Of a stretch of DNA of 64,000 bases, positions 281-55,332 are shown in pieces. Location of the stretch: IMG/VR virus record IMGVR_UViG_3300022921_000002, positions 157,448-221,447 of that record; one strand, given 5' to 3'. Both the position numbers and the translations under genes were made by a program. Every line of letters begins with the position of its first letter. Positions within the stretch are counted from its first letter, which is position 1. A model generated the notes under the pieces. The model was not told where the DNA came from. It did not search any database and was given only the letters and a program-made list of their open reading frames with translations.

Positions 281-1028
281 GTATTATATAATTTATACTA
301 ATGATAACCTATCAAAACAATACGCAAATGATGCTGCCGAGCAATGTAAAAAGCTTGGAGTAAATTATGAGTTATACGAAGGATGGAAACCACAAGGTGG
401 TCCTGGTCAAATGTGGAGAAAGTTTACCGCTGAAACAGGAATTCCAATCAAATCATTTAAAAGAATGATGGTTGGTGCTCATGGTTGTATGGCTTCTCAT
501 TTACAATTATGGCAAAGGATTGTTCAGAATAAAGAATGTGCTGTTATATTAGAACACGATGGGATGATGCTTCATAAAGTAAAGTTGGATATTCCTGATA
601 ACAAAATCGTTGCGTTAGGATACAAATATAGAGAATGGGAAAACTATGACTATAAAACCGCAGGTCAACCCGAAAGAATTAAAGATGTGAAATTTCATCC
701 AGGTTCTCATGCGTATGCTATTACACACATTACCGCGCAGAAAATGATTGATGAAGTAACAAAGGTAGGTGTTACCGAGGCAATTGATAATCGTTGGTTT
801 ATGAGCAGTCGGAAAAATTTTACTAAAATACCAATGGCTATTTGTGATCCTATAGCAGCAATTGGGTGGTTAAGATTATCAACTATTCAGAAATATAGTG
901 CCACTCATAATAATCATGCCGAAATGTTAGAATCTTTTAAGAACAACTTTAAAGGTCAGCTAAAGGAATCAATCGTTATACCCAAAGGGTCTGTAAATAT
1001 TATAAATAGAAACAAAATCAGAGAATAG
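267..1028 (+). CDS. Glycosyltransferase family 25-like protein
   Basis: GCMASHLQLW...VILEHDG and GSHAYAI motifs typical of GT25. Confidence 0.7.
   Translation: MKVNKYYIIYTNDNLSKQYANDAAEQCKKLGVNYELYEGWKPQGGPGQMWRKFTAETGIPIKSFKRMMVGAHGCMASHLQLWQRIVQNKECAVILEHDGMMLHKVKLDIPDNKIVALGYKYREWENYDYKTAGQPERIKDVKFHPGSHAYAITHITAQKMIDEVTKVGVTEAIDNRWFMSSRKNFTKIPMAICDPIAAIGWLRLSTIQKYSATHNNHAEMLESFKNNFKGQLKESIVIPKGSVNIINRNKIRE
1001..1008 (+). promoter_or_regulatory. T4-type late promoter
   Basis: TATAAATA about 30 nt upstream of the ATG at 1038. Confidence 0.7.
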
Positions 1029-1037
1029 AGGTATCTT

Positions 1038-4000
1038 ATGGCAGACGAAAGCAATAAGGACAAAAAGAAAAAGGTTAAGGGATTTAAAGAATTTGATCCT
1101 GGAAACTATATTGATATTGAACCTACTATCAATGAAGCAAAAGTAGGCGAGGTTGTTATTTCTTGGGGACGTATGAACCCTATTACAACTGGGCACGAAA
1201 AACTTATCAATAGAGTTTTAAATGTAGCAAAATCAAAGAATGCTATTCCTGCTGTATTTTTAACACATTCTCAAGATAAAACAAAAAATCCATTGTCATA
1301 TAATGATAAGATCAAATATGCCGAGGTAGCATTTGGTAAAATCATTAAAAGATCAACTGCCAAGACAATCATTCAATTAATGCAGCAGTTACAAAAGAAA
1401 TTTAAAAAGGTAACTCTCGTTGTTGGTTCTGACCGATATAAAGAGATGGATACATTGCTTAACAAATACAATGGTAAAGAATATAAATTTGATGAAATAG
1501 AAGTTGTATCCGCAGGTGCTAGAGATCCTGACGCTGAAGGTGTTAAAGGAATGTCAGCATCAAAAATGCGTGAGTATGCTGTTTCAGATAATATCAAAAA
1601 GTTTACTACAGGATTACCTAGTAAGCTAAAAACAAGCGCGGCCGACATTATGGCCAGCATTAAAAAGGGAATGGGAATGTCGGAAGAATATAACGAAGAT
1701 AACTTTATCGAAGAAGATGAATTAGACGAAGCTTTGACTCGACAGCAGCGTATTAAACGCGGCCGTCAAATGCGAAGAATGCGTGTTAAAATGAAACGAG
1801 GTCGGGAAAAGGCAAAGCGGCGCCGTGCCAATATTGATGTTTTGAAAAGAAGATCAAGAAAAGCAGCACGTAATATAATTAAAAAGCGTCTTGCTGGTAA
1901 TAAACGATATGCTGATATGGAGCCTGCGGAAAAGGAACGTATTGATAAACGCATTGAAAAGATTTCAAAACAACGTATTGATAACCTGGCAATTAAATTG
2001 TTACCTTCTGTTAAAAAGAAAGAACGTGAGAGATTACAAGCACGTCATAATAAGAATGAGTCTGTTGATCTGAATGAGATGTGGGGTGCATATGTAACTA
2101 AGCGACCACATATGCTTATGGATAAAAACAACAAACCAAAGTTTGATAAACGGTTTAAGATGTTTAAACCTAAACAAGTTACAGAGATGAATGAGTTTGA
2201 TATTGAAGATATCGTTGAACTTATGGAATCAGTTGAAAAATTTACCGAAACAACAGGTAAATATTACACAGGTGTTGCTAAAAATAAGAAAGATGACCGT
2301 GAAGATCATTTTGAACGTAATGCTAAAAAGGCTGATGATGATCCTTCAGCATATAGGCCAGCACCAGGTGATAAAGAAGCAAAGACAAAAGAATCAAAGC
2401 ATACAAAAAAAGCACGAGCGATGGGTTACACTGAAGAATTTGATTTTTTAGGTGAAGATGCCGCAGGCAAATCATTAGCTGATAAAGCAAAGAAATCTGA
2501 CATGCCTGCAGGGATTTTACGTAAAGTATATAACCGTGGTGTTGCCGCATGGAAAACAGGTCACCGCCCAGGAACAACACCTGAACAATGGGGACATGCT
2601 CGAGTAAATTCATTTATTACTAAATCCTCTGGTACATGGGGTAAGGCTGATAAAGACCTTGCTGCAAAGGTTAATGAATCAGTAGAAACAGTTAATGAAG
2701 TTAGGAGAAACGCTATGGCTGCCAAGCCTAAGAACACTAAAGCAGAACGTGAGAGTAGACTAGCACAGAATATGAAAAAATTAAAGGATATGCGTAAATC
2801 TGATAAGTCTTGGGGTAAATCAAGCGCATTTGATTATCACGAGGAAGTAGAACTTGACGAATTAACAGCAGCTGAGAAAAAGCTAGTAAATCAAATGTAT
2901 GATAAAAAAGGCAACCTCACACCACATGGTAAAAAAGTAATGAACCACGGTAAGAAAAAAGGTGATAAAGGTTTTGTTGAATCGTTAGATGATAAGTTTG
3001 AAGCATTCATCTCACTTAATGAAGCCGCAACGCCTCAAATGAAAAAGGCAGCTGCAAGTATCGAAGCATATGCAAAGAAAAGCGGTGGCATTGATAAAGC
3101 AGACTTTATGAAAGCAGCAAAGATGCTATCATCTGGTAATGCTGGTATAAAATTCGTTAAATTTGTAGATGATCTTGATACAGAACCACGCGAATGGTTA
3201 ATCACTAATCTTGCTAAGACTATGGGTAAACAAACAGTTGAAAAAATGTTTAAAGTTAAAATCCGTGAAGAAGTAGAACTAGATGAAGCCGAAATGAGCC
3301 TATATGATAAAATAAAGGCAGCAAGAGCAAACCCATCACCAGACAAGCCTGCAAGAGGTCGTGGATCAAAAAATCGTAATCCAAAAACTTATGACCCACG
3401 CAAAGCACTAGACAAAGAAGATGATCGTCTTCAAGGTATGGTAAAGAAAAAATTGAAAAAAGAAGAGTTTGAACTTGATGAAGATCTTACACACCAGACA
3501 GTAAAGCCACCGAATCATACTAAAAAGTTTTCTGGGAAAGATTCTCGTGACACACAAGACACATCGGCGAATGAGTGGGATGCGCCAGGTAATAAGCGTC
3601 ATACTGTAACGAGTAGTCAAGCAGATGCTCATGATAAAACTGCTGCACATCACAATGAGGTTGCGGATGCTCATACAAAGGCAGGCGAAAAATCTTCTAG
3701 TCCAACTTTACAAAGATTGCATCACCAAGCCTCAGTCCATCATAAGAAGGCAGCAGAAGCACACTTTAATGCTTCTCATTCTAGTTCAGGTGCAGATAAA
3801 GATGGTTCTATTCAAAAAAAGGCAAAGGATCTGCATATGGCATACCATCTAACTATGCATGCTAACAAGATGTCTCAAGAAGTAAGAAATAAGGGTTCTA
3901 AAGCAAAGCGTATCCTTGAAGAAGTAGAAGAGCTTGATGAAGATGCTAAAATGAAAAAGCAATCTGATGATAACCTAAAAAGTTTACATAAGCAATTCAA

Positions 4001-4301
4001 AGGTCAAGATCAAAAAATGCCATCAACTCAGCATATGATGAAGCGTATCACTAAAGAAATGAAACGCCGTAATATGGGTGAGTCTGAAGAAGCAGCAAAG
4101 TTAGCATCTGTTGCTAACGGTGGTGTTCAGGATAAAGAAGATAAATTTAGAAATGCATTAAACCGTGTTCGTAATAAAAAATCAATGAAAGATGAAAGCT
4201 CTTGTGGATCATCAAAGAAAAGAAATGAAGAAGCTGGCGCAGGCGAAGAAGGTACAGCTAAATTAGTTAAAAGACTAAAGAAGGATACACCTAATGCATA
4301 G
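1038..4301 (+). CDS. Putative head-packaged polyprotein: N-terminal HxGH-type (cytidylyl/adenylyl)transferase domain plus about 10 basic modules separated by acidic [LIV]xE linkers
   Basis: WGRMNPITTGHEKL...VVGSDR...MSASKMRE nucleotidyltransferase motifs; repeated EEVELDE/EEFELDE/xLNE linkers; late promoter. Confidence 0.7.
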   Translation: MADESNKDKKKKVKGFKEFDPGNYIDIEPTINEAKVGEVVISWGRMNPITTGHEKLINRVLNVAKSKNAIPAVFLTHSQDKTKNPLSYNDKIKYAEVAFGKIIKRSTAKTIIQLMQQLQKKFKKVTLVVGSDRYKEMDTLLNKYNGKEYKFDEIEVVSAGARDPDAEGVKGMSASKMREYAVSDNIKKFTTGLPSKLKTSAADIMASIKKGMGMSEEYNEDNFIEEDELDEALTRQQRIKRGRQMRRMRVKMKRGREKAKRRRANIDVLKRRSRKAARNIIKKRLAGNKRYADMEPAEKERIDKRIEKISKQRIDNLAIKLLPSVKKKERERLQARHNKNESVDLNEMWGAYVTKRPHMLMDKNNKPKFDKRFKMFKPKQVTEMNEFDIEDIVELMESVEKFTETTGKYYTGVAKNKKDDREDHFERNAKKADDDPSAYRPAPGDKEAKTKESKHTKKARAMGYTEEFDFLGEDAAGKSLADKAKKSDMPAGILRKVYNRGVAAWKTGHRPGTTPEQWGHARVNSFITKSSGTWGKADKDLAAKVNESVETVNEVRRNAMAAKPKNTKAERESRLAQNMKKLKDMRKSDKSWGKSSAFDYHEEVELDELTAAEKKLVNQMYDKKGNLTPHGKKVMNHGKKKGDKGFVESLDDKFEAFISLNEAATPQMKKAAASIEAYAKKSGGIDKADFMKAAKMLSSGNAGIKFVKFVDDLDTEPREWLITNLAKTMGKQTVEKMFKVKIREEVELDEAEMSLYDKIKAARANPSPDKPARGRGSKNRNPKTYDPRKALDKEDDRLQGMVKKKLKKEEFELDEDLTHQTVKPPNHTKKFSGKDSRDTQDTSANEWDAPGNKRHTVTSSQADAHDKTAAHHNEVADAHTKAGEKSSSPTLQRLHHQASVHHKKAAEAHFNASHSSSGADKDGSIQKKAKDLHMAYHLTMHANKMSQEVRNKGSKAKRILEEVEELDEDAKMKKQSDDNLKSLHKQFKGQDQKMPSTQHMMKRITKEMKRRNMGESEEAAKLASVANGGVQDKEDKFRNALNRVRNKKSMKDESSCGSSKKRNEEAGAGEEGTAKLVKRLKKDTPNA

Positions 4302-4566
4302 CTTCAAGCAACATTTGGAAGCATGCTGGTCTGATTACAAACAGGTTGGCATGAAGAAAAAAGGTGACAAGATGGTACCTAATTGTGTACCAAAGAATGA
4401 AAGTATTCCACCTGAAGTTGTGGGTGCGGCAATTGCTGCTCCTATGGTTGCACAAGGTATTAAGCATACCGCAAAAGGTGTTGCCAAAGCAGTTAAAGGT
4501 GCTATTAAGGCACGTAGAGCTATTAAGAATGCAGGTCAACGAATTGCTGATAAGGTAGTAAAATGA
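4294..4566 (+). CDS. Small basic putative internal head protein
   Basis: N-terminus MHSFKQHLEA (CTS-like); CWxxYKQVGMKKKGDKMVPNCVP motif. Confidence 0.6.
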   Translation: MHSFKQHLEACWSDYKQVGMKKKGDKMVPNCVPKNESIPPEVVGAAIAAPMVAQGIKHTAKGVAKAVKGAIKARRAIKNAGQRIADKVVK

Positions 4567-4850
4567 AAACATTTAAACAATATATCTTTGCTGAGCATAC
4601 ACAATGTGGAACACCTGATTGTTGTGGTGAATGTGATACCGCCGTTACCGAAGGCTCAGAAACCTGGGAAGCTGGATATAAGCGCCGTGTTGTAAAAACA
4701 ACTGATCCTGACCATAAAGAGGCAGGACATAATTGGCGTATTAAAGGTAAAGATAAATCTCATCTTACTATTAAATTATATAAAGAAAAGCCTTCACAAC
4801 AAGAATTCAATAAACAAATGAAAAGAGTTGCAGGACACGAGTTCGGATGA
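4563..4850 (+). CDS. Small putative internal head protein with Cys cluster
   Basis: N-terminus MKTFKQYIFAE; HTQCGTPDCCGEC motif; overlaps both neighbours. Confidence 0.6.
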   Translation: MKTFKQYIFAEHTQCGTPDCCGECDTAVTEGSETWEAGYKRRVVKTTDPDHKEAGHNWRIKGKDKSHLTIKLYKEKPSQQEFNKQMKRVAGHEFG

Positions 4851-5140
4851 AAAGCTTTAAGCAATATATTTCTGAAGGTATCATGGTTAAACTGATTCGT
4901 GGTAAAGGCCAGGATACTTTAAAAATGAAAGACACTAAAGAAAAGAGTTGGGTTGAATTACGCGGCAAACCTAATTTTGAAACTAAATATGATAAAAGGG
5001 ATCCGTTACATAAAGCAATTACGGCGCTAGGTAAATCGGCAAGCATATCTGATTTTATGAATGGTGATGAAGTAAGTATAAATCCAAACCATCCTGACGG
5101 TAAGAAAGCGTTGGCAACTATAAAGAAGTTAATGAAATGA
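4847..5140 (+). CDS. Small basic putative internal head protein
   Basis: N-terminus MKSFKQYISE; ATGA coupling. Confidence 0.6.
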   Translation: MKSFKQYISEGIMVKLIRGKGQDTLKMKDTKEKSWVELRGKPNFETKYDKRDPLHKAITALGKSASISDFMNGDEVSINPNHPDGKKALATIKKLMK

Positions 5141-5403
5141 AAACATTTAAACAACATATGGAAGCAACATACCAAGGTAAAGAGGTTAAGTTAAACAAAC
5201 CTATGGCGGGTGATGTTGCTAAATCAAAAGTATTCGTTGATCCTGATGGCGACGGTGTTGCTAAAAAAGTTAATTTTGGTGACAAGAATATGACAATTAA
5301 AAAGCATATTCCAGGTCGACGTAAATCTTTTAGAGCAAGACATAATTGCGATAATCCTGGGCCAAAAGATAAGGCACGATATTGGTCTTGTAAAGCCTGG
5401 TAA
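5137..5403 (+). CDS. Small basic putative internal head protein
   Basis: N-terminus MKTFKQHMEA; KKVNFGD...RRKSFRARHNC...ARYWSCKAW domain. Confidence 0.6.
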   Translation: MKTFKQHMEATYQGKEVKLNKPMAGDVAKSKVFVDPDGDGVAKKVNFGDKNMTIKKHIPGRRKSFRARHNCDNPGPKDKARYWSCKAW

Positions 5404-5407
5404 ATAT

Positions 5408-5415
5408 TATAAATA
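5408..5415 (+). promoter_or_regulatory. T4-type late promoter
   Basis: TATAAATA upstream of ORF 5442. Confidence 0.65.
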
Positions 5416-5441
5416 AAACAAACAGCAAATAGAGAAGTAAT

Positions 5442-5786
5442 ATGTATAGTTTTTCAGAACATAGTCTTATTGAACACGTTGAGGCACATCTCATTGAGAA
5501 TGATCTTGTACTTGATAATATAGATGACGAACAACTTGACGAAATCATCGGTATGGCCGCAAAGGCTGTAGGGGCAGTTGCTAAGGTAGGTGCAAAAGGT
5601 GTTCGACGAGCATTAACAAATAAACAAGGTCAATTCCGTTTATCAACTGCTGGGCGTAATACGGCACGTGCTAATAAAGCAAAACGTATTAATGATAGAG
5701 CAAATGCTATCCGTGATAGAAAAACCACAAAGGCGAATATTGACAAGGCCAGAGAAAACTTACGCAAAGCAAGAGAGGGAAAATAA
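5442..5786 (+). CDS. Putative internal head protein (acidic propeptide plus basic domain)
   Basis: Acidic N-terminal part ending QLDE, then an Arg/Lys/Ala-rich domain. Confidence 0.55.
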   Translation: MYSFSEHSLIEHVEAHLIENDLVLDNIDDEQLDEIIGMAAKAVGAVAKVGAKGVRRALTNKQGQFRLSTAGRNTARANKAKRINDRANAIRDRKTTKANIDKARENLRKAREGK

Positions 5787-5787
5787 A

Positions 5788-6351
5788 ATGGACACGAATA
5801 CAGTTAGAGAAGCAATTATTGATGCCCTCGGTCGAGTAGGTGAACTCGACGAAAAGAAAATGGATCCAGTGGGGCAGGCTGACGCAGATATTGATAACGA
5901 TGGAGACGTTGATAATTCAGATGAATATCTTCACAAACGTCGCAAAGCTATCAAAAAGGCTATGAAAGAAGAGCAAGAAGCTCGCTTAAATGAAGCAACA
6001 GCTATGACTGCTGGGCCAAAAGGTAGCTTAGGCGGAATTGGTAAAAAACCATCTATGCCTGCTCCTGGAGATAGTAAAAGAACTATTAATGCTCCAAAAG
6101 GAACCGCACGTCATCATGCCGATATGGCAGCAAAACATCAGCAGTCAGCTGAGCATCACGGAAGAAGAGCATCTGAACATGAGGATGAAGGAAATGATGA
6201 TAAAGCAGATCATCATTATGATAAAATGCAACATCACGATAATGCGGCTGATGCGCATCAGCATGCACAAGATATGATTAAGAAACACGGTTCCGATCAT
6301 CCTGAAGCTCAAAAAGCATCTAAAGAAGCTAATAAGCATAAATTATCATAA
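5788..6351 (+). CDS. Putative internal head protein with EF-hand-like loop and His-rich C-terminus
   Basis: ATG 5788 after GAGG; ELDE and RLNE sites; DADIDNDGDVDNSDE loop; dense His repeats. Confidence 0.55.
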   Translation: MDTNTVREAIIDALGRVGELDEKKMDPVGQADADIDNDGDVDNSDEYLHKRRKAIKKAMKEEQEARLNEATAMTAGPKGSLGGIGKKPSMPAPGDSKRTINAPKGTARHHADMAAKHQQSAEHHGRRASEHEDEGNDDKADHHYDKMQHHDNAADAHQHAQDMIKKHGSDHPEAQKASKEANKHKLS

Positions 6352-6388
6352 GAATAAATAAGAAACCCAAATAAGGAGATAAAAACAA

Positions 6389-6691
6389 ATGGCACTTTGG
6401 GGAAAAACCGACACATTAGCAGATGTTCCAAAATGGTTGGAAGACGACGCTAATAATACAAACAAATCAAATGATCGCGACAACGCGGTGTTTGTTGACC
6501 TTACAGAAGCTGGAGTTGCAGCTAACAGAGCAAAAGGTTTGACAGGTCCGGGCTGGTGGTTGTACCACACATCAAATGGCCGTCATTATGCAGAATGCTT
6601 GGTACCAATGAAAGTATCCGCGGGAGATGCAGGTGACCTTGGTGTAACAGGTGATACTGCTGTTGAAGACTTAATCGTAGCTGATACTTAA
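6389..6691 (+). CDS. Hypothetical, probable virion protein
   Basis: AATAAATA and AAGGAG upstream; MALWGKTD N-terminus. Confidence 0.5.
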   Translation: MALWGKTDTLADVPKWLEDDANNTNKSNDRDNAVFVDLTEAGVAANRAKGLTGPGWWLYHTSNGRHYAECLVPMKVSAGDAGDLGVTGDTAVEDLIVADT

Positions 6692-6707
6692 GTAAAGAAA
6701 ATATAAT

Positions 6708-7082
6708 ATGAAATTAACAGAATCAACCTTTCTGTTATTTGCCGCAAAACATTATGATAATCCACAATGCTCCGACGTATCAGAGTTTGAAGAGGATTTA
6801 AAACGTTTTCATTATTTACGAAAACTATTTGGCAGATATAGGCAAGATAAAGATTTAAAAGAAAGGTTGATTCTGAATCACCTGATAATCATATATAACG
6901 TATTCGGTGAACAAGCAACGAGTATTTTGTTTATGAGACTTTATGAATACCATGATTATTTAAAACCGTTTGTTGAATACTTAAACTTCATGCCTACGGT
7001 TATTGAATATGATGGGATTATTATACACAAGGATAGTATTGTGTCTGATAAGTGTATTAAAGAAAAACTCGAAGGAATTTGA
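6708..7082 (+). CDS. Conserved hypothetical protein of marine T4-like phages
   Basis: FAAKHYDNPQC...ERLILNHLIIIYNVFG pattern recalled from marine T4-like phages. Confidence 0.55.
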   Translation: MKLTESTFLLFAAKHYDNPQCSDVSEFEEDLKRFHYLRKLFGRYRQDKDLKERLILNHLIIIYNVFGEQATSILFMRLYEYHDYLKPFVEYLNFMPTVIEYDGIIIHKDSIVSDKCIKEKLEGI

Positions 7083-7085
7083 CCC

Positions 7086-8222
7086 ATGGTCGTTGATCTA
7101 TTTTTAGTTTACCAATTCATCCGCCGTTTGGCTACACCATTTAATAAGTGGGAAGCATATAAGCAAGGTATTATTGATAAAGATGGTAAAGTATTAATCA
7201 AATCAAAAGATTTTACAAAAGGTTCTCAACGTAAAGCGTGGGGAATTTTTGATAGAATGATTGCTAACCTTAAAAAGTTGTTGGCAAAGGTACCTGGCGG
7301 TAGTTCTCAGTTTGCATCATATGCTGCCGCATTGTTTCTAATTAAAGAATACAAACATTTTACCGATGAATCATTACTAAATGAAGAATGGACTGATGAA
7401 CAATTAGATGAATCAATGCATTTATTTCATATTAGATATAATCATTATACCATACTCTCCGAAAATGTCAATGGTTATTTTGATGAACTTGATGAAAAAC
7501 TTAAAGCATCAGATGATATGGGTGTGTGGGTAAAAGATTTTCAGAAATCAGATGCACCACAATTCAAAGGCAAATCTCAAAAGAAAAGACAACAAATGGC
7601 CGTTGCTGCAAAGCTTGACGCAATGGATGAAGAATTACAAGAAGGCGCATTTAAAAGAATAGCACAAGTGCAATCAAATAAAGCAGATCGTATGGCTTCA
7701 AACGACAAAAAAGGTTTGGATACGTATAAGAAAAAACCAAAAACTGAAATTAAAGAAGCTGCTTCTCCACGTTGGAAAAAAGCTGGACCAAACGGCGAAA
7801 TACAAGCCACTATTGGTGGAAAGAAATATCAAATAGAAAAATCCTTAGATCACAATGAACGCCATAAAGGTGAGTGGAAAGTTATGGTTTGGGATAAGCG
7901 TAGAAACAGCTGGGAGTGGGAAACCACTGAGTACGGTAAAGCCAACGCTAAAGATTGGATTATGGATAGACTAAAAGAATCAGCTACTAATATGCGTAAT
8001 ATAAAACTTGTTAATAAAATCAAGAAGTCTGGTGTTGTAAAATCTGGTTCTATGTCACAGAATGATCCCAAAAAATCTGTTGATACAAAACCTGAAATTA
8101 CAGAAGAAATGCCAGCCAATGCAGTAAGTACCGGTGCAATTGCTAATATGGATGCGTCGGGAATTGATAACAAAAAGAAAAAGAAAAAGATTAAGGATAT
8201 GATGAGGAGAACCCTACAATGA
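7086..8222 (+). CDS. Conserved N-terminal domain plus modular basic segments; second putative processed head protein
   Basis: TPFNKWEAYKQGIIDKDG N-domain; QLDE, ELDE, ELQE, EIKE, RLKE and ITEE boundaries. Confidence 0.55.
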   Translation: MVVDLFLVYQFIRRLATPFNKWEAYKQGIIDKDGKVLIKSKDFTKGSQRKAWGIFDRMIANLKKLLAKVPGGSSQFASYAAALFLIKEYKHFTDESLLNEEWTDEQLDESMHLFHIRYNHYTILSENVNGYFDELDEKLKASDDMGVWVKDFQKSDAPQFKGKSQKKRQQMAVAAKLDAMDEELQEGAFKRIAQVQSNKADRMASNDKKGLDTYKKKPKTEIKEAASPRWKKAGPNGEIQATIGGKKYQIEKSLDHNERHKGEWKVMVWDKRRNSWEWETTEYGKANAKDWIMDRLKESATNMRNIKLVNKIKKSGVVKSGSMSQNDPKKSVDTKPEITEEMPANAVSTGAIANMDASGIDNKKKKKKIKDMMRRTLQ

Positions 8223-23056: not shown

Positions 23057-23246
23057 CAATATCTGCGAAGTCGTAAGTACACGGACCGATGTTATAGTTG
23101 AAGCTGAAGCCGATAATATGAGACCAGGAGTTTCATTTGAAGCATATGTAGCAAACAATAAAATTAAAATGAAATGGAACGGCAAGATTTACGTTGGTAA
23201 TGTGTCAGGTATGGAATTTACATCAACAGGACCTAAAGAACTATGA
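23037..23246 (+). CDS. Hypothetical protein
   Basis: AAAGG upstream; ends in ATGA overlap with the next gene. Confidence 0.5.
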   Translation: MRKIIYDNICEVVSTRTDVIVEAEADNMRPGVSFEAYVANNKIKMKWNGKIYVGNVSGMEFTSTGPKEL

Positions 23247-23650
23247 AGGTGGGGTTTACTGCATCGGCATTTGATTTACTCCACGCAGGACACGTTCAAA
23301 TGTTAAGAGATGCAAGAGAACAATGTGACTTTTTGATATGCGGATTGCAAATTGATCCGACATTAGACCGAGCCGATAAGAATGCTCCTGTGCAAAATAT
23401 AGTTGAAAGATATACACAATTAAAAGCAATTAGTTACGTTGATGAGATCATTCCGTATTTGACAGAATCAGATCTTTGTGATATATTATCAATGTACCAC
23501 ATAGATGTTCGTATTCTAGGTGTTGAGTACAAAGAAAAAGATTTCACAGGTAAAGACATATGCCGCAAACGTGGCATTGATTTATATTTTAATAAACGAG
23601 ATCACCGTTTTAGTACAAGTGATTTAAGAAGGAGAGTTTGTAATGACTGA
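23243..23650 (+). CDS. Cytidylyltransferase (TagD / glycerol-3-phosphate cytidylyltransferase-like)
   Basis: SAFDLLHAGHV, YVDEIIPY, RDHRFSTSDLR. Confidence 0.85.
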   Translation: MKVGFTASAFDLLHAGHVQMLRDAREQCDFLICGLQIDPTLDRADKNAPVQNIVERYTQLKAISYVDEIIPYLTESDLCDILSMYHIDVRILGVEYKEKDFTGKDICRKRGIDLYFNKRDHRFSTSDLRRRVCND

Positions 23651-48166: not shown

Positions 48167-48588
48167 AGATTTTAATATTTGGCTTGCCGGGTTCAGGTAA
48201 AACCTGGCTTGCCGAACGACTACAAAAGCGTTTGAATTGCGCTTGGTTCAATGCCGATAAAATCCGTGAAATGGCAAACGACTGGGAATTCAGTGAAGCT
48301 GCTCGTTTACGCCAAGCTTATCGCATGAAAGGTATTGCTGATTACGAAAAAGAAATGAGACGAATGGTTATCTGTGATTTCGTTTGTCCACTTGAAGAAA
48401 CAAGAGAAATCTTTGATGCCGATTATACCGTATGGATGGATACTATCCAAGAAGGTCGATTTGGTGATACTAATAAAATGTTTCAAAAACCTTCAGAGGT
48501 TAATTACCATGTAGAAAAATGGTTTGATAACACAGATGAAGGTTTAGCAGATGCTATTGAAAGACATATAAGGATTAATAATGTTTGA
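48163..48588 (+). CDS. Adenylyl-sulfate (APS) kinase-like P-loop kinase
   Basis: GLPGSGKT, FNADKIR, FSEAARLRQ, ICDFVCP, FQKP. Confidence 0.65.
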   Translation: MKILIFGLPGSGKTWLAERLQKRLNCAWFNADKIREMANDWEFSEAARLRQAYRMKGIADYEKEMRRMVICDFVCPLEETREIFDADYTVWMDTIQEGRFGDTNKMFQKPSEVNYHVEKWFDNTDEGLADAIERHIRINNV

Positions 48589-48988
48589 TTACAAGAAACC
48601 AACAGTACAGATGCTAGGTCGATGGCAACCTTGGCATGATGGTCACACCGAACTATTTAAACGTGCTCATTCAATCACAGGTCAAGTTGTTATTATGGTC
48701 CGTGACGTATTTAACTTTGACGGTGATGCAGGTGCAGGTCGTACCGCAACACAAGATGATAATCCTTTTGGTATTATTGACGTTATTAATAATATTGAAG
48801 CAGGTCTTAGACTACACGGATTTGAAAATGGTTATGAGTATTTGATTTTAGAAGTACCTAACATTGTTGATATTAGTTACGGTCGTGGTGTTGGATATAC
48901 ATTTACCGAACACGATTTGGGTAAAGACATCCATGACATATCAGCAACAAAAATTCGTCAACAAATGCGAAAAGAAGGAAAACTCTAA
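48581..48988 (+). CDS. HxGH nucleotidyltransferase (cytidylyltransferase-like)
   Basis: LGRWQPWHDGH, DNPF, ISATKIR. Confidence 0.7.
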   Translation: MFDYKKPTVQMLGRWQPWHDGHTELFKRAHSITGQVVIMVRDVFNFDGDAGAGRTATQDDNPFGIIDVINNIEAGLRLHGFENGYEYLILEVPNIVDISYGRGVGYTFTEHDLGKDIHDISATKIRQQMRKEGKL

Positions 48989-49419: not shown

Positions 49420-50745
49420 TTAGAACAAGTTAGATACCAATACACGGCGGTAGTACAAGTTGGTGTTTGCTGTAAGAGCACCAAGACCTTGTGAGTCGTG
49501 GTCACCTTCAGCATATGGGTTAGCAACCATACCGTAGCGAGTCTTAAACCCGATTTTTGGTTGGAAGCTGTTTTCACCAACGGCACGAACCATTTGCAAC
49601 GGTACGTATGGGCAATAGAACAAGCCAGCATCAAATGCACTTGAACCTTTATAACCGACAACCAAATAGTTGCTGCCTGCATATGGGTCAATATACACTC
49701 TGTAACGACCGTTAAGAACACCGGCGAATGTGTTGCCTGTATCATCAACTGCCAAGTTGTTACCGTTAAGTGCTGGTGTGTAGTCGAGTACACCGGCCAT
49801 TTGCAATGCTGATGCAACATCAGAAGAACAGATAACCATGTTACCTTTACCACGACGTGTACCTTTTGCGATTGCGTTTGCTTCTTGTTCAATTTGGAAC
49901 ATCAAGCCCTTGAACTTCTCAACAGACCAACGTCCGTTTGCATCAACGTCAAGATCGAATGTACCAGGAGTAGCTGTAGCTGTTGCACCTGCTTTAGCAG
50001 TTGTGTAAATTGTACGAACTAATTCACGGTTGATTTCGACCAAGATTTCTGATTGCAGAATGTTTGCCAGCTCTGTTTCAGCATCCAAACCGTGTACGGC
50101 TTTAAGATCCTGAGCAAGTTCTGTTGTGTATTCTGCTTTCAATGCGCGTGATTTTGCAGTTACGGCAACTTTCTCGATTGAGAATGCCATTTCAGCAAAT
50201 CCTGCACCTACACCGTCGCCCAATGCTTCAGCTGCTGCTGTTGTCATACCTGTACCAGTATTAGCAGTTGCAGCGGAACCAACAGTACCCGCAGATGCGC
50301 CAGCACCTGAGAAGCCTGTTGCTGCTTCGTTGTAGAATGCTTCGTCACCAGCTTGGCTGGTGTAATGCGAACGCATTGCGAAGATCAAGCCTGTTGGGCC
50401 TGTCATAGGTTGAACACCAGCAATGTCATATGCCATCAAGTTTGGCATAGCACGGCGTACCAATGAAATCAGGATAGGATCGTAACCTGCAACAGGACCT
50501 GCTGCAGTTGCGCCTGAACTGAAACCTGCTGGTGCGGAACCTGCAGCATTGGTTGGTGCGGCTTCTGACAACAAGGAGCTCATGCCCACTTGTGTGTCGC
50601 CTGACTCCATAAGAGCCTTTTCTGTGTTTTCAAGAATTGTAGCGGTTACGCTTTTCTTGTGCTGATCGGCGATTGGTGAAAAAGAATCGTGCTCAAGAAT
50701 TGGGCCCCACTTCTCCACAAGCGCTTGATAGTTTGACTGAGTCAT
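49420..50745 (-). CDS. Major capsid protein (T4 gp23-like)
   Basis: LVRRAMPNL, GVQPMTGPTGLIFAMR, AKSRALKAEYT, FYCPYVPLQ, FQPKIGFKTRYG. Confidence 0.98.
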   Translation of the reverse strand: MTQSNYQALVEKWGPILEHDSFSPIADQHKKSVTATILENTEKALMESGDTQVGMSSLLSEAAPTNAAGSAPAGFSSGATAAGPVAGYDPILISLVRRAMPNLMAYDIAGVQPMTGPTGLIFAMRSHYTSQAGDEAFYNEAATGFSGAGASAGTVGSAATANTGTGMTTAAAEALGDGVGAGFAEMAFSIEKVAVTAKSRALKAEYTTELAQDLKAVHGLDAETELANILQSEILVEINRELVRTIYTTAKAGATATATPGTFDLDVDANGRWSVEKFKGLMFQIEQEANAIAKGTRRGKGNMVICSSDVASALQMAGVLDYTPALNGNNLAVDDTGNTFAGVLNGRYRVYIDPYAGSNYLVVGYKGSSAFDAGLFYCPYVPLQMVRAVGENSFQPKIGFKTRYGMVANPYAEGDHDSQGLGALTANTNLYYRRVLVSNLF

Positions 50746-50797: not shown

Positions 50798-51763
50798 TTA
50801 TTTCAAATGTGTTTTAGCATTAAGAGCCTCGACGAGAGCATTAACTGTATAATAATCCGATGCAGGTTTAGCTACAACGGTATCTTCTACAATGATTTCG
50901 TCTTCCTCAACATTAGCATCTTCCGTTACGGCTTTTGCTTCTGCAAAGAATGATTCCTTAAGAGTATTAAGGTTTGCGGTGTACTCTTCGATATTATTAA
51001 AATCGAGCTTTTCAGCAAGAACCTTCATTCTTTCCTGTTGGGTCAGAGTAAGATCCTCAGTGACTTCTGCGAACACTTTTCCGGCTTGCAAAGAAGTGAT
51101 CTCTTTTTGCAATGCAATGTTCTCGTCAATACGAGTATTTGCATCAGTTTTCAATCCTTCAACTTCTTCTTCAAGCTCAGCAACAACATCAATGGTATCT
51201 TCATTGATTGCAATGTTGTGCTCTTCAAAAAGTCCTTTCAGACCGTCCATCAACGATTCTGCCATTTCAACCTTAATGCCGGCTTCGATAGCAACTTCGT
51301 TTTCTGTCATCCACTCTTCTACAACATAGTCGAGATAGGAATCTAGGTTTTCAACAAGGCCATTGACAGTTGAGTCAATTGAAGATTTCATTTCTTCATC
51401 AAGCTGTGTTGAATATTCTTCATTCATTTTGGCAGCTTTTGCCGCAGCACTTTCATTTACTGCTGCTTCAAATACCAAAGTTACTTTTGATTTAAACTCT
51501 TCTGAAAGATCCATGCCTTCAAACATTGCTGAGATTGATTCGTCAAGTTCAACGACTTCTTCTACAACAACTTCTGCATCAGCAGATTCTGCATCTTCTT
51601 TCATTCCAGGTGTTACTGCTGCAATTTTTTCAGGTGTTGGATCAACCTTCTTTGCTACATCAGCCTTGTGTTTTTTTGCCGTACCGCCTTTTGGTGTAAC
51701 AGGATCTTCAACTGAAGAAACACCATCGTCGGCTACAAACTTTTCTTGTAGTTCATCTGACAT
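50798..51763 (-). CDS. Prohead core scaffold protein (gp22-like)
   Basis: Acidic coiled coil; LSEEFKSK, FEAAV, YLDYVVEEWM; synteny. Confidence 0.92.
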   Translation of the reverse strand: MSDELQEKFVADDGVSSVEDPVTPKGGTAKKHKADVAKKVDPTPEKIAAVTPGMKEDAESADAEVVVEEVVELDESISAMFEGMDLSEEFKSKVTLVFEAAVNESAAAKAAKMNEEYSTQLDEEMKSSIDSTVNGLVENLDSYLDYVVEEWMTENEVAIEAGIKVEMAESLMDGLKGLFEEHNIAINEDTIDVVAELEEEVEGLKTDANTRIDENIALQKEITSLQAGKVFAEVTEDLTLTQQERMKVLAEKLDFNNIEEYTANLNTLKESFFAEAKAVTEDANVEEDEIIVEDTVVAKPASDYYTVNALVEALNAKTHLK

Positions 51764-51811: not shown

Positions 51812-52513
51812 TCATTTTCTGAGTGATTCGATAAATTTATTCAACATAGCAGCTGCTTGTGCTTCATCAATCCGCTTGACAACTGTTTTGTATTGTGTTT
51901 CAACTTCTTGTTGAATTTCTTCAATCACTTCAGCAACCTGTTCTTGAACCTGCGCAGGCAACCAAGAAGATGAAGCAATGTCATAAAAGTATTCAACATT
52001 TTCCATAATACCATTTACGAAACAATTAGGGCCAGACGGATCGGTTACAACATCAACAGTAGCTAAATGGAAATCTGATTGAACTTCCATGATACCATCT
52101 TTTGTTGGTTTAACTGAACCAAGTCCACGTGTTGATACACCGACCTGAACTCCTTCGTCAATGAATGTCTTAACAATTTCACCCATTGGAGTACCAAGCA
52201 ATTTTGCTTTACCCATAAAGTTTGAACCATCTCTCCTCATTTCAGTAATCAAATGAGATACACGGTCGCCGTTTACGGTTGGTCCATCAGGGTGACCAAG
52301 TTCCCCAAGAGCTCGTTTGGTTTCAACAAAATCTTTATTGTATCGAACCATTTCTTTCTCAAGGATTTCGGATGGGTAACATCTACCGTTGCGATTGTTA
52401 ATGTCACCTTGCATAAAGATACCTTCAATGAAGTAGGACTTTTTGCCAGTTTCTTCATTTAATTCTGTGCTCGTTGAGGCACTTTCGTTAAAAATTTCTG
52501 TAATAAGTTTCAT
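51812..52513 (-). CDS. Prohead protease (gp21-like)
   Basis: MKLITE, IEGIFMQ, NRNGRCY, ALGELGHP, GVSTRGLGS, DVVTDPS. Confidence 0.96.
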   Translation of the reverse strand: MKLITEIFNESASTSTELNEETGKKSYFIEGIFMQGDINNRNGRCYPSEILEKEMVRYNKDFVETKRALGELGHPDGPTVNGDRVSHLITEMRRDGSNFMGKAKLLGTPMGEIVKTFIDEGVQVGVSTRGLGSVKPTKDGIMEVQSDFHLATVDVVTDPSGPNCFVNGIMENVEYFYDIASSSWLPAQVQEQVAEVIEEIQQEVETQYKTVVKRIDEAQAAAMLNKFIESLRK

Positions 52514-52567: not shown

Positions 52568-53776
52568 TTATTGAAGTGCTTCTCTTGCAAATCCTACAAT
52601 TTCGTCAAAACCTGCTTGATCTTTTTTCATAACGGATTCCATTTGTTTACGGTTTTTTGTATTCAAACCTTTAAACATTGAATTAAGCAATTTTGCATCT
52701 TGAGGTGAAATCCTAGTTGATTTACCGTTGTCAAATTTAAAATTACCAGATTTTACTGCTTCGTCAATCGTAGCTGCTTCATTTTTCTCCCAAGGGGCTT
52801 TTTTCAATGTGACTGCTTTTTTACCCTCTTTGGATGGCGCTGTTGCCTTATCCAATTCTTTTGCAAGTGCAGCACTTTGGCTTTCTTTAACACCACCGCC
52901 AAGAGCCTTTTTGATTAACTCATTTGCTTTAACTTTTTTGACTTCCGACATTTTATCCATGCCATGGTCATCTGTTTGTTTTGCTCTTGTTGTTCTCATA
53001 ACTGTGCGAGTTTTGCCATCAGGACCAGTCATAGTTACTGGTTTTTTTGTAGCAGCTTGAGTTGTTTCCTCAAGTTCTTCGCCCATTGACATTACTTCGG
53101 CTGTTGCATAACTGTAAAGTGTTTGCATTTCTTTTGCCACACCTGCCAATTTGTTTTGAAACCATTCTTCAGGATCTGATGTTTTTGACACATATGCCGC
53201 AATACCTTGCATTGCGTGTGACATTGAACGCAAAGCATTCATCATCATTGGCTTTTCTTCCATTGGGTTTTCAGCAAGATCAACATCTTCTTTCATAGAA
53301 TTTTTATATAGATCCAATGCTTTTGCATATTTTGGATTTTTCATCATACGTTTTGATTCACCGTGATCTGGATTATCGTGTGCCATACGGACCGTAGGCT
53401 CATCCAAGGAATGCTTTTTCATATGTTTCTTATATGCATCAAACTTCTTAGGATCGACGGTCTTGCCAAAGGATTTACTCATTGGTTTCATTGAACGTGA
53501 GATCTCATCAATTTGTTTTGCTTCTTCGCCTAACTTACGACCGCCACCTGCATCTGAACCAGTTTTCTTGATATATGCTGAGTCATATTTTGCATCGGTG
53601 CCATCATCGGCAGGGCGCTTTTTCATAGTTTTACCTTTGATTTCACCAGTAAAAACTGCGTCAGGTGCAACCGGGTGTTTAACTGTTTCAGCATCGTGCA
53701 TATCTTTAAAGCGATTATTTTCATCGGAGCGGTTATGCTTCGATACTTCAGCTAGTTTTTGTTTAAAAGACTTCAT
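52568..53776 (-). CDS. Modular prohead core / internal protein at the gp67-gp68 position
   Basis: Between portal and protease; MKSFKQKLAE N-terminus; QIDE, DLAE, ELEE and TIDE boundaries. Confidence 0.65.
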   Translation of the reverse strand: MKSFKQKLAEVSKHNRSDENNRFKDMHDAETVKHPVAPDAVFTGEIKGKTMKKRPADDGTDAKYDSAYIKKTGSDAGGGRKLGEEAKQIDEISRSMKPMSKSFGKTVDPKKFDAYKKHMKKHSLDEPTVRMAHDNPDHGESKRMMKNPKYAKALDLYKNSMKEDVDLAENPMEEKPMMMNALRSMSHAMQGIAAYVSKTSDPEEWFQNKLAGVAKEMQTLYSYATAEVMSMGEELEETTQAATKKPVTMTGPDGKTRTVMRTTRAKQTDDHGMDKMSEVKKVKANELIKKALGGGVKESQSAALAKELDKATAPSKEGKKAVTLKKAPWEKNEAATIDEAVKSGNFKFDNGKSTRISPQDAKLLNSMFKGLNTKNRKQMESVMKKDQAGFDEIVGFAREALQ

Positions 53777-53814: not shown

Positions 53815-55332
53815 TTATTCTTCTGCAGGCTCATCAGGGTATTCAGCTTTTTCAGCTTCAATCTGTTCCTTCATATCTTTCATTTCATCATCTGACATCT
53901 GAAGGACGTTACGGATAACCCATTCTCTTGAATAATAAACACCAACATGGTCTTCAACATCACGTAGTGTTTGCATACGTTCACGGATAATTTCTGCTTC
54001 TTTTAATTCTTCAAAGTAATTATCATTAATAAAATCGTAACGAATAGCATTTTTGATCTGTGCAAATTCTTCAGGTGTCATAATGCCTTTAAGGATCATT
54101 TGTCTTTCGAGCATAATAGTAAACAATCCAGCAAACCGTGATCTAACACGGCGAATCATTTTAGTAAACTTCAATTCGTCACGAGTAATCTCTGTACTTC
54201 TACCAAAAGTATTCATTGTTTCAGGCTCAAGACGTGTTAACGGTACACGTAATGATTTAAACAACTTGTTCTTAAAGTATTGCATATTTTCATCAGTACT
54301 TAGTGCCTGAGATGAACCTCCTGCAAGTGTATCAACTTCTGTTGACCTTTCACCGCCTCTACGAGGGAACCAAAAGTCTTCAGTCATTGTCATCATTTTG
54401 CGGGCATCACTAATTTCACCAGTACTTGAATTATATTGTAACTTATTCTTATGGCGAACCATCATATCACGTAGATATTGTTCAGCCTTTGATTTCGGCA
54501 AGTTACCAACATCAATATAGAAAATACGGCGTTCAGGTGCTCTCGTTAATGTATAGATAACGGTTGCATCTTCCAACATTCTCAACTGATTGAGTGGTTT
54601 AATTGCGGGATGTAGATATGACAAAACAAGGGAATTAGTTTCATTCATAAGACCTGAAGTAACTCGAGCAACCGAGTCCTTAGCAATTTTGTAGCCTTGT
54701 GTACCTTGAGTTGCTGATGATGATCTATCGGCACCAAATCCATTTTCAGAATACATATAATATTCTGCTTTTACTTTTTTAACTGGGATACCGCTATGTG
54801 TATCCTTTTGACGTTTATCAACCTCACGAATAAGTTTAAGTTTCCGTGGATCAACATATCTTACCTCAACAATACCTTGCTTAAGGTCTTCATTATCAAT
54901 CATCATATGATAATTTAATCTTCCGTCTACATAGAACTTGGAAAATATTTCATATGCGGTATTTTGAAAATCCAATAACGTCAGGACATTTTCAAATTCT
55001 TCAGTAACTTTATTCTTAACTTTGTCGGGAAGATCGGTATCATCTAATACGATCTCGACAATTTTATCATCTGATGAGATACTAATTGCTTCATTAATAA
55101 CTTCATCAATGCCCTGAGTAATTTCAGGTTGCATTGCCATAACTCTATATTTTGTAACAAGCTCGGATTCTGTTTTGGCATTCCCTTCCATATCGAGGAA
55201 TGTACCATAAAAGCCACCCATAGCATTGCCGACGGTAATAGCACCGTCATCATTTTGCGGTTCAGCAAAGGAGACTGGAACATTGTCCGCCTCCTCTACC
55301 TCACGCTTGATTTCAAAACCAAAAATTCTCAT
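53815..55332 (-). CDS. Portal vertex protein (gp20-like)
   Basis: NQLRMLEDA, RAPERRIFYIDVGNLPK, EDFWFPRRGG, EITRDELKF. Confidence 0.97.
   Translation of the reverse strand: MRIFGFEIKREVEEADNVPVSFAEPQNDDGAITVGNAMGGFYGTFLDMEGNAKTESELVTKYRVMAMQPEITQGIDEVINEAISISSDDKIVEIVLDDTDLPDKVKNKVTEEFENVLTLLDFQNTAYEIFSKFYVDGRLNYHMMIDNEDLKQGIVEVRYVDPRKLKLIREVDKRQKDTHSGIPVKKVKAEYYMYSENGFGADRSSSATQGTQGYKIAKDSVARVTSGLMNETNSLVLSYLHPAIKPLNQLRMLEDATVIYTLTRAPERRIFYIDVGNLPKSKAEQYLRDMMVRHKNKLQYNSSTGEISDARKMMTMTEDFWFPRRGGERSTEVDTLAGGSSQALSTDENMQYFKNKLFKSLRVPLTRLEPETMNTFGRSTEITRDELKFTKMIRRVRSRFAGLFTIMLERQMILKGIMTPEEFAQIKNAIRYDFINDNYFEELKEAEIIRERMQTLRDVEDHVGVYYSREWVIRNVLQMSDDEMKDMKEQIEAEKAEYPDEPAEE

Follow-up and report, generated by a model that had tools for sequence, protein, structure and literature searches.

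The 64,000-nucleotide stretch of IMG/VR virus record IMGVR_UViG_3300022921_000002 analysed in this work (positions 157,448 to 221,447 of the record; hereafter the window) carries at 1038..4301, on the + strand, an intact open reading frame (ORF) of 1087 amino acids (aa). Its product, here called P0001, is probably a late internal head (cargo) polyprotein of a marine T4-like myovirus, which would be targeted to the prohead, cut at its linkers, and retained as separate products together with the DNA. An earlier note on this DNA had proposed that P0001 is packaged in the prohead, matured by the prohead protease into about 11 small proteins, and injected as a set of effectors. The part of this proposal that concerns a capsid-targeted, linker-cut polyprotein is supported by the sequence, by a structural model and by published mass spectrometry (MS) of homologues, and each of the refutation tests named in the note that could be run in silico turned out in favour of a polyprotein; on the other hand, the effector role found no indication of any kind, M2 being the single module with a recognisable fold. 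The core of the proposal is supported because the scaffold protein of the same phage shares the linker motif, cassettes are shuffled among homologues, stand-alone modules bear leaders of their own, and the leader of P0001 is similar to that of T4 IPI; further support comes from a late promoter, from linkers that are not spanned by folded domains, and from the virion proteomes already published for homologues.

Linkers, cassettes and modules of P0001

Basic modules alternate with acidic linkers along P0001, and the linkers end in [LIV]-x-E. The ten linkers quoted in the earlier note were all located, with the P1 glutamate at residues 33, 231, 347, 473, 554, 608, 662, 750, 815 and 968, and the count of about 11 modules stood as a 33-residue leader followed by 11 modules; nevertheless, one site, FTE/T at residue 404, had been missed (here and below, a slash marks the predicted point of cleavage). 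Every module has a net charge of at least 0, with +29 in M3, and the N-terminal 33-residue piece has a net charge of −1. A protein identical to P0001 has also been recorded from a JGI metagenome contig (P0002).

The peptide ELDE is present five times in P0001 when 0.03 copies are expected, and none of 5000 composition-preserving shuffles reached five; likewise, E[LIV][DNG]E occurs five times versus 0.19 in the shuffles. The window has 98 ORFs, in which the latter pattern was found 14 times, five of them in P0001 and one in the scaffold protein. The five copies of ELDE differ in codon usage (TTA/CTT/CTA, GAC/GAT and GAA/GAG), and therefore what is conserved is the peptide and not a DNA repeat. 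The possibility that the linkers represent a DNA-level repeat or a recombination signal was ruled out on the same grounds.

P0001 belongs to a family of more than 5000 proteins of 600–1250 aa from marine metagenomes. The earlier note had suggested that module order be compared across related phages; when P0001 was cut at the proposed sites and each piece was searched against 119 homologues, the pieces matched end to end, in varying orders and combinations. Of the 127 distinct start contexts, 103 had [LIVMF]xE precisely at the boundary, and so did 63 of the 87 distinct end contexts; the background frequency of the motif is 2.5% per position. Module M8 was found in 15 upstream and 14 downstream contexts with [LIVM]xE/ at every junction, and its copies are mostly 90–98% identical (84–99% over full-length hits), versus approximately 55% for the N-terminal core of the same proteins. 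The order of M4a and M4b is reversed in most homologues, and for this reason the region that had been taken as a single M4 is regarded as two cassettes, with the extra boundary FTE/T at 404. In a whole-protein BLAST search that made no use of the proposed sites, 48–58% of the internal high-scoring segment pair (HSP) ends were no more than 8 aa away from a site, where 17% would be expected; this search was composition-corrected, given that an uncorrected version produced long low-complexity alignments that were uninformative. The Synechococcus phage S-RIM2 encodes a cytidyltransferase-like protein of 1021 aa (BFVD match M4PQB5), and given this length, long versions are also present in cultured cyanophages.

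An AlphaFold2 model of P0001, built from 70 homologues, showed a mean predicted local distance difference test (pLDDT) score of 62.5 and confident domains at residues 36–216, 232–339, 474–555, 607–636 and 662–746. According to the earlier note, folded domains spanning most linkers would speak against its proposal; in the model not a single confident domain extends across any linker, and all ten linker sites are found inside a segment of pLDDT below 50, or at most two residues from one. The leader falls below 50 across residues 1–16 and 24–35. Since about half of all 20 [LIV]xE tripeptides lie strictly within low-pLDDT segments, this test is weak when it is extended to the complete set, and the cassette junctions were relied on instead.

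The predicted pieces, all on the + strand, are as follows. The leader (residues 1–33; 1038..1136) is a putative capsid-targeting propeptide of the T4 IPI type, Lys-rich and with the arrangement KGFKEF + 11 aa + INE/A. It is followed by M2 (residues 34–231; 1137..1730), which ends in EEDELDE/A and which is the 'cytidylyltransferase' portion of the protein. Pfam detected a cytidylyltransferase-like domain at residues 43–143, together with DUF5824 at residues 408–540, and PHROGs assigned the first 300 residues of P0001 to phage 'cytidyltransferase' families (phrog_3041/395). The match of M2 to PF01467 reached 23.7 bits, with a cut-off of 21. Residues that are invariant in 70 homologues include P29, E33, E231 and those of the motifs GRMNPxxxGH and SxxKMR. 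A Foldseek search with M2 retrieved NaMN adenylyltransferase, PPAT, FAD synthetase and GCT (glycerol-3-phosphate cytidylyltransferase) with a probability of 1.0 and target TM-scores of 0.57–0.69; a sequence search against PDB chains gave no match, and M2 was placed by the fold search alone. With the GRMNPxxxGH and SxxKMR motifs and a Rossmann-like fold in the model, M2 is predicted to be a nucleotidyltransferase of the HIGH superfamily.

Module M3 (residues 232–347; 1731..2078; end VDLNE/M) is very basic and helical in the model: helices are predicted at 235–337, and the ten-residue blocks over 241–330 have a mean pLDDT of about 88–96. M4a (348–404; 2079..2249) ends in KFTE/T, the boundary that was obtained from the comparison of homologues and was absent from the earlier note, and M4b (405–473; 2250..2456), ending in FDFLGE/D, contains the N-terminal part of the Pfam DUF5824 match. 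The conserved DUF5824 core, as defined by Pfam and the homologues, corresponds to M5 (474–554; 2457..2699; end ETVNE/V). M6 (555–608; 2700..2861) ends in EEVELDE/L, and M7 (609–662; 2862..3023), which starts with LTAAEKK and ends in ISLNE/A, occurs in 19 different upstream contexts among the homologues. M8 (663–750; 3024..3287), starting with AATPQMKK and ending in EEVELDE/A, has a pLDDT of approximately 90. The C-terminal part is formed by M9 (751–815; 3288..3482; end EEFELDE/D), the His-rich M10 (816–968; 3483..3941; end EEVEELDE/D), mostly disordered in the model, and the basic C-terminal module M11 (969–1087; 3942..4298). Pfam, PHROGs and other look-ups gave no named relatives for modules other than M2 and M5/DUF5824, and an atlas look-up with M8 returned solely unnamed viral clusters with scores below 0.9.

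Several observations refer to individual modules. In the atlas clusters DUF5824 is a promiscuous viral domain that is found alone or fused to Zeta-toxin/AAA kinases, PAP2 phosphatases, DUF6321 or DUF5661, and to DUF5754 in Nucleocytoviricota; it may be an adaptor or a DNA-binding unit instead of an effector. Stretches rich in His with the pattern AHH..HH..AH, predicted to be disordered, are present at residues 816–968 of P0001 and at 5788–6351 (+) in the window, and a short similar stretch occurs in the P0001 homologue P0062; these stretches are possibly metal-binding. Two more proteins of 135 aa, encoded at 23243–23650 (+) and 48581–48988 (+), have HIGH-type nucleotidyltransferase N-termini (..LLHAGH.. 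and ..GRWQPWHDGH..) and are devoid of a leader. The genome thus appears to encode three HIGH-superfamily enzymes, just one of them cargo-like.

Head genes, leaders and late promoter of the same phage

The − strand of the window contains a complete T4-type head and tail module that includes the genes for the capsid protein (49420–50745), the scaffold (50798–51763), the protease (51812–52513) and the portal (53815–55332), and that further encodes the tube, the sheath and the large terminase. The earlier note had stated that the window encodes a homologue of the T4 protease gp21, and this was borne out: the product of 51812..52513 (−), the predicted processing enzyme, matches phrog_207 with an E-value of 1.7e-73 and retains the positions of T4 His85 and Ser140. 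Also correct was its statement that the capsid protein has a site of this kind, LLSE/AAP; LLSE (residues 58–61; 50563..50574, −) is the predicted maturation site, with E61 as the last residue before the cut, and it can be aligned position by position with FLTE/AE of T4 gp23, the classical maturation site. The N-terminus of the protease itself, MKLITE/IFNE/...ELNE/, resembles the leader of T4 Alt, MELITE/LFDE/, and its residues 1–20 contain three possible sites of self-cleavage; in T4 gp21, the tripeptide LIE is found at residue 9.

The motif of the P0001 linkers is also present in the scaffold, as EEVVELDE at residues 68–75 (51539..51562, −), just before the conserved core; likeness to other T4-type scaffolds starts at residue 76–77. 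Among related scaffolds in IMG/VR, 43 distinct sequences have EEV[IV]E[LIVF]xE/S[IV] at this site, where it abuts the conserved core. The N-terminal extension that would be removed, 75 residues up to EEVVELDE/S, is variable, and in a few related scaffolds the site is replaced by E-Y-E-A/G or H-D-A/S, which have no P1 Glu. Between the portal and protease genes lies that of a Lys-rich protein of 402 aa (52568..53776, −) that starts with MKSFKQKLAE/V and has one cassette in common with P0001 homologues. In a further protein (P0123), a module of the 402-aa protein and an M8-type module are joined via NLDE/A. The position of the 402-aa protein is that of T4 gp67/gp68, and it contains several [LI]DE/ sites; no PHROG or Pfam match was found for it, and a tblastn search against isolated phages gave none.

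In T4 (NC_000866) the leaders of ipII and ipIII are MKTYQEFIAE, and that of ipI is MKTFKEF + 9 aa + ITE/A; the N-terminus of P0001, KGFKEF + 11 aa + INE/A, is comparable to the KTFKEF + 9 aa + ITE/A of ipI. It has been reported that targeting by the T4 leader depends on residues 4 and 7 and its processing on residues 8 and 10, that the T4 protease cleaves after L/I-X-E, and that core proteins are broken into numerous fragments and virion proteins are trimmed of their N-terminal propeptides (PMC9026906). Leaders of this class, that is, similar to a T4 capsid-targeting sequence (CTS), are also carried by genes that encode single modules; a T4 CTS has an aromatic residue at position 4, Phe at position 7, and L/I at P3 and Glu at P1 of the cleavage site. 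There are more than 800 stand-alone DUF5824 proteins, and of the 79 with a short leader (most of these proteins are approximately 83 aa long), 67 start with M-x-x-F-x-x-[YF]-[ILMV]-x-E. This decapeptide stops at the position of FLGE/D in P0001, where M5 begins; accordingly, the fused and stand-alone versions would share the same mature N-terminus. Stand-alone M8 proteins (P0122 and P0124) also have CTS-like leaders, MKTFLQLKEE...KLDE/VATPAMKK and MAKTILELRE/A, and at 80 IMG/VR loci many of the nucleotidyltransferase homologues carry a canonical leader of 10–12 residues that abuts the enzyme domain, e.g., MKTFNNFISE/AK.

In the region that follows P0001, five basic proteins of 88–114 aa, encoded at 4294..5786 (+), have N-termini that resemble the T4 CTS; in order, these are MHSFKQHLEA, MKTFKQYIFAE, MKSFKQYISE, MKTFKQHMEA and MYSFSEHSLIE. 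From this comparison of leaders the region looks like an array of internal-protein genes analogous to T4 ipI–III. In 31 homologues the P0001-like protein runs on as ...DTPME/SIPPE... past the stop of P0001, and the SIPPE tail corresponds here to a separate overlapping gene, 4294–4566 (+), with its own start MHSFKQHLEA. Tails rich in Gly, Ala and Lys that look amphipathic (SIPPEVVGAAIAAPMVAQG... and IIGMAAKAVGAVAKVGAKG...) follow a [LI]xE or NE/ junction in the products of 4294–4566 and 5442–5786 (+), and in other phages the polyprotein ends with the tail of the former. Downstream, at 7086..8222 (+), a protein of 378 aa shares cassettes with P0001 homologues according to the module search. Pfam gave no match for the small neighbouring proteins or for the 378-aa and 402-aa proteins.

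With regard to expression, the octamer TATAAATA, a T4-type late promoter −10 element, is located at 1001..1008 (+), 30 nucleotides (nt) upstream of the P0001 ATG. On the − strand, the genes for capsid, scaffold, protease and sheath are preceded by the same octamer at a distance of 26–51 nt, and of 61 homologous genes 17 have it in the preceding 80 nt, versus 1.3% of background windows; a second copy (5408–5415) is present in the array of small genes. From these sequence elements, P0001 is predicted to be transcribed late, alongside the head genes. The upstream neighbour (267–1028, +), which ends 9 nt before P0001, encodes a family-25 glycosyltransferase of the lipopolysaccharide biosynthesis type, and the late promoter of P0001 sits within the 3′ end of this gene. 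By protein similarity the nearest isolated relatives are the Pelagibacter phage HTVC008M, the Methylophilales Melnitz phages and the T4-like cyanophages; no isolated phage with near-identical DNA was found.

Virion detection, proposed pathway and alternatives

MS of CsCl-purified virions has revealed homologues of M2 in the T4-like cyanophages S-CREM2 (gp154, three peptides) and S-SZBM1 (gp140, two peptides), and the same was reported for S-SCSM1 and S-CBWM1 (PMC10665884, PMC9146016). S-CREM2 gp154, which starts with MKNFSSFLTE/A and whose gene is preceded by TATAAATA, shares 29% identity with residues 28–256 of P0001; gp155, gp156 and gp160, encoded downstream of it, are also part of the virion proteome. 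In these studies the gene was considered metabolic or regulatory, and neither a leader nor protease-delimited cassettes were mentioned (PMC10665884, PMC9146016). A literature search returned no papers on 'cytitidyltransferase' in virions and none on DUF5824. This locus of S-CREM2 (positions 2609–7236 of the retrieved S-CREM2 sequence) is partly syntenic with the window and includes a late sigma factor, the leader-bearing cytidylyltransferase and then several virion-detected hypothetical proteins; S-CREM2 gp159 is homologous to the product of the window ORF 6708–7082.

From these observations the following pathway can be proposed. P0001 would be expressed late, and its 33-residue leader, similar to the CTS of T4 IPI, would carry the entire chain into the prohead core. 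There, the gp21-type protease would cut after the Glu of every [LIVMF]-x-E linker, mostly in the extended form EE-V-E-L-D-E, giving rise to the leader and about 11 separate basic proteins of 54–198 aa. The released set would consist of a nucleotidyltransferase (M2), the strongly basic helical M3, the DUF5824 core (M5) and eight proteins without known relatives. Since there is a single leader, the cassettes would be loaded as an equimolar set; the basic products would then be retained in the DNA-filled head and would most likely exit with the DNA. At the linkers, cassettes would be swapped between phages, and they would be interconvertible with stand-alone genes that bear their own 10-residue leader.

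A number of results do not favour this proposal. For an uncultured phage, the targeting, cleavage, retention and ejection of P0001, as well as the function of every module, are steps that we infer. The P0001 gene is 47 kb away from the head module, beside glycosyltransferase and lysis genes, and 13 extra Lys-rich residues precede KGFKEF, so that P0001 has no canonical 10-residue CTS at its extreme N-terminus. A minority of the nucleotidyltransferase homologues at the 80 IMG/VR loci is leaderless; acidic linkers are few in gp130 of HTVC008M, the closest cultured relative; and the Glu of the M3/M4 site (347) is not kept in many homologues. Predicted helices cross sites 554 and 750 in the model. 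The homologue counts cover related sequences and are thus not phylogenetically independent, and the MS support consists of two to three peptides, for which, according to the authors, contamination is possible (PMC10665884, PMC9146016).

Several alternatives were considered. The data fit equally well with P0001 acting in association with the DNA, as an internal protein or a core protein. In its specific form, this alternative holds that P0001 is packaged and cut as proposed, with fragments that aid head assembly, neutralise or condense the DNA, or exit before packaging, as is the case for the pieces of T4 gp22/gp67/gp68 or for IPIII. The T4 proteins that are cut into many fragments are indeed core proteins (PMC9026906), the modules of P0001 are rich in Lys and Arg with an effector domain recognisable in none but M2, and a cassette is shared with the protein at the gp67/gp68 position. 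Nevertheless, the T4 fragments that exit the head are acidic, whereas the P0001 modules are neutral to basic; one module is predicted to be enzymatic and has homologues detected in mature virions; and the fast turnover of cassettes, with near-identical copies in diverged backbones, is more like that of arms-race cargo. We view this form of the alternative as unlikely.

It is also conceivable, with a smaller probability, that the leader directs P0001 into the prohead and that the protein stays largely in one piece, with a single cut after residue 33 and perhaps another after 231, EEVELDE acting as a flexible spacer or as a contact with the scaffold core or the basic modules. The T4 motif is necessary and insufficient for cleavage, with many L/I-x-E tripeptides that stay uncut; the helices across 554 and 750 agree with an intact chain; and passages of one report describe N4 vRNAP and some polyvalent proteins as packaged intact (PMC5512222). 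Against this stands the exact coincidence of the leader [ILMV]xE of stand-alone modules with the linker position, which would generate the same mature N-terminus, and the presence of the same heptad before the conserved scaffold core. In addition, the motif is almost missing within the modules: of the 20 [LIV]xE tripeptides of P0001, 18 fall no more than 10 aa upstream of a boundary, a count that is partly circular given that the boundaries were picked by this motif in the earlier note, and their density is 0.3 per 100 aa inside modules versus 1.9 in the remaining ORFs, a depletion that is marginal when compared with composition-matched shuffles (317/5000). Finally, P0001 could be a cytoplasmic multidomain enzyme that never reaches the virion, with linkers that are ordinary disordered spacers and a likeness to T4 leaders and gp21 sites that is coincidental or derived from recombination junctions. 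The location of the gene among metabolic and glycosyltransferase genes, its annotation everywhere as an auxiliary metabolic gene, and the lack of the leader in some homologues would fit such a role. It is, however, very improbable in view of the late promoter shared with the head genes, the detection of homologues in virions by MS, the CTS-like leaders on homologues and adjacent genes, and the variable codons of the linkers, which are not those of DNA recombination signals.

A broader scheme can be tentatively put forward, which at present seems to us somewhat short of an even chance: marine T4-like phages may possess a modular 'cargo train', with one leader and up to a dozen interchangeable cassettes, uncoupled by the protease at an EEVELDE-type site that is common to the scaffold. 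Cassettes would pass freely from phage to phage, change their place within the train, and switch between it and stand-alone genes with a leader. Ocean viromes would hold thousands of variants of this rapidly evolving injected arsenal, with a nucleotidyltransferase as one of its members, and the 'cytitidyltransferase' gene would be the head of an internal-protein system. Injected internal proteins are the first phage products that meet the host defences; in T4, IPI is an anti-restriction protein and Alt modifies the RNA polymerase. To our knowledge, internal proteins are almost unknown beyond a few model phages, and they evolve too fast to be recognised by homology. Were the scheme true, a sequence rule (a leader plus [LIVM]xE-delimited cassettes) would find the virion cargo of abundant ocean phages in metagenomes, and the widespread cyanophage 'cytitidyltransferase', taken as an auxiliary metabolic gene, would be reread as packaged cargo. 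Likewise, tailed phages would be capable of a polyprotein strategy with the head protease acting in trans, and natural leaders and linkers would become available to load several foreign proteins at a fixed ratio into T4-type capsids.

Comparison with known systems

The capsid-targeting leaders of T4 and their processing by gp21 are well known. In the literature that was searched, no precedent was found for a chain of about a dozen cargo cassettes that can be shuffled, that share a single leader and that can be exchanged with stand-alone leader-bearing genes; such a chain would be new. P0001 resembles T4 IPI, IPII, IPIII and Alt in its predicted late expression, in a putative leader close to the type MKT[YF].EF...[LI]xE/, in the L/I-x-E motif and in the presence of a gp21 homologue in the genome; the predicted mature products are small and basic, the gene content is hypervariable among related phages, and in both cases there is one enzyme among the cargo (Alt in T4, the putative nucleotidyltransferase here). 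In contrast, each T4 internal protein has one gene, one leader and one cut (two in Alt), whereas P0001 has about 11 units behind a single leader. P0001 also differs in the 13-residue Lys-rich extension of its leader and in the extended acidic EEVELDE linkers, present in the scaffold too, and the mature parts have no sequence similarity to those of T4.

The polyvalent proteins described by Iyer, Burroughs, Anand, de Souza and Aravind in 2017 share with P0001 the presence of many unrelated modules per polypeptide, mosaic and fast-changing architectures, and predicted packaging and delivery with the DNA; in the passages of that paper considered here, the authors liken them to viral polyproteins (PMC5512222). 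According to the same passages, they differ by having recognisable enzymatic effector domains, and their release, if any, would be carried out by embedded peptidases (zincin-like MPTase and others), whereas P0001 is predicted to be released in trans, with the prohead protease acting at a defined motif. Searches of P0001 against Pfam and PHROGs returned CTP_transf_like and DUF5824 only and nothing of that repertoire of conflict-related effector domains, and no peptidase domain was found with Pfam, PHROGs or Foldseek. These passages also describe polyvalent proteins as scarce in cyanobacteria and make no mention of marine T4-like phages (PMC5512222).

In the phiKZ-like giant phages (201phi2-1, phiKZ and SPN3US) a gp21-related protease also cuts many head proteins after the Glu of a three-residue motif, and some of the substrates, such as inner-body and ejection proteins, are cut several times, with products that are kept in the head and ejected. 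Nevertheless, the motif is S/A-x-E, the multiple cuts correspond mostly to redundant propeptide removal and free no string of unrelated cassettes, and the lineage and the proteins are unrelated. T4 gp22, gp67 and gp68 are also processed into several fragments by gp21, and in this phage the scaffold has the acidic site of the polyprotein; however, these proteins are acidic structural scaffolds, encoded in the head cluster, and their fragments mostly exit the head, whereas P0001 is basic, encoded elsewhere and holds a predicted enzyme. P0001 is not an acidic coiled-coil protein of the head cluster with homology to gp22, gp67 or gp68, and neither PHROGs nor Pfam gave a scaffold-family match for it. 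By homology of M2, P0001 is also related to the 'cytitidyltransferase' or NMNAT-like gene of T4-like cyanophages and to HTVC008M gp130; M2 is 42–46% identical to cyanophage and HTVC008M proteins, and the cyanophage versions compared differ from P0001 in length, having 286–362 aa versus 1087 aa.

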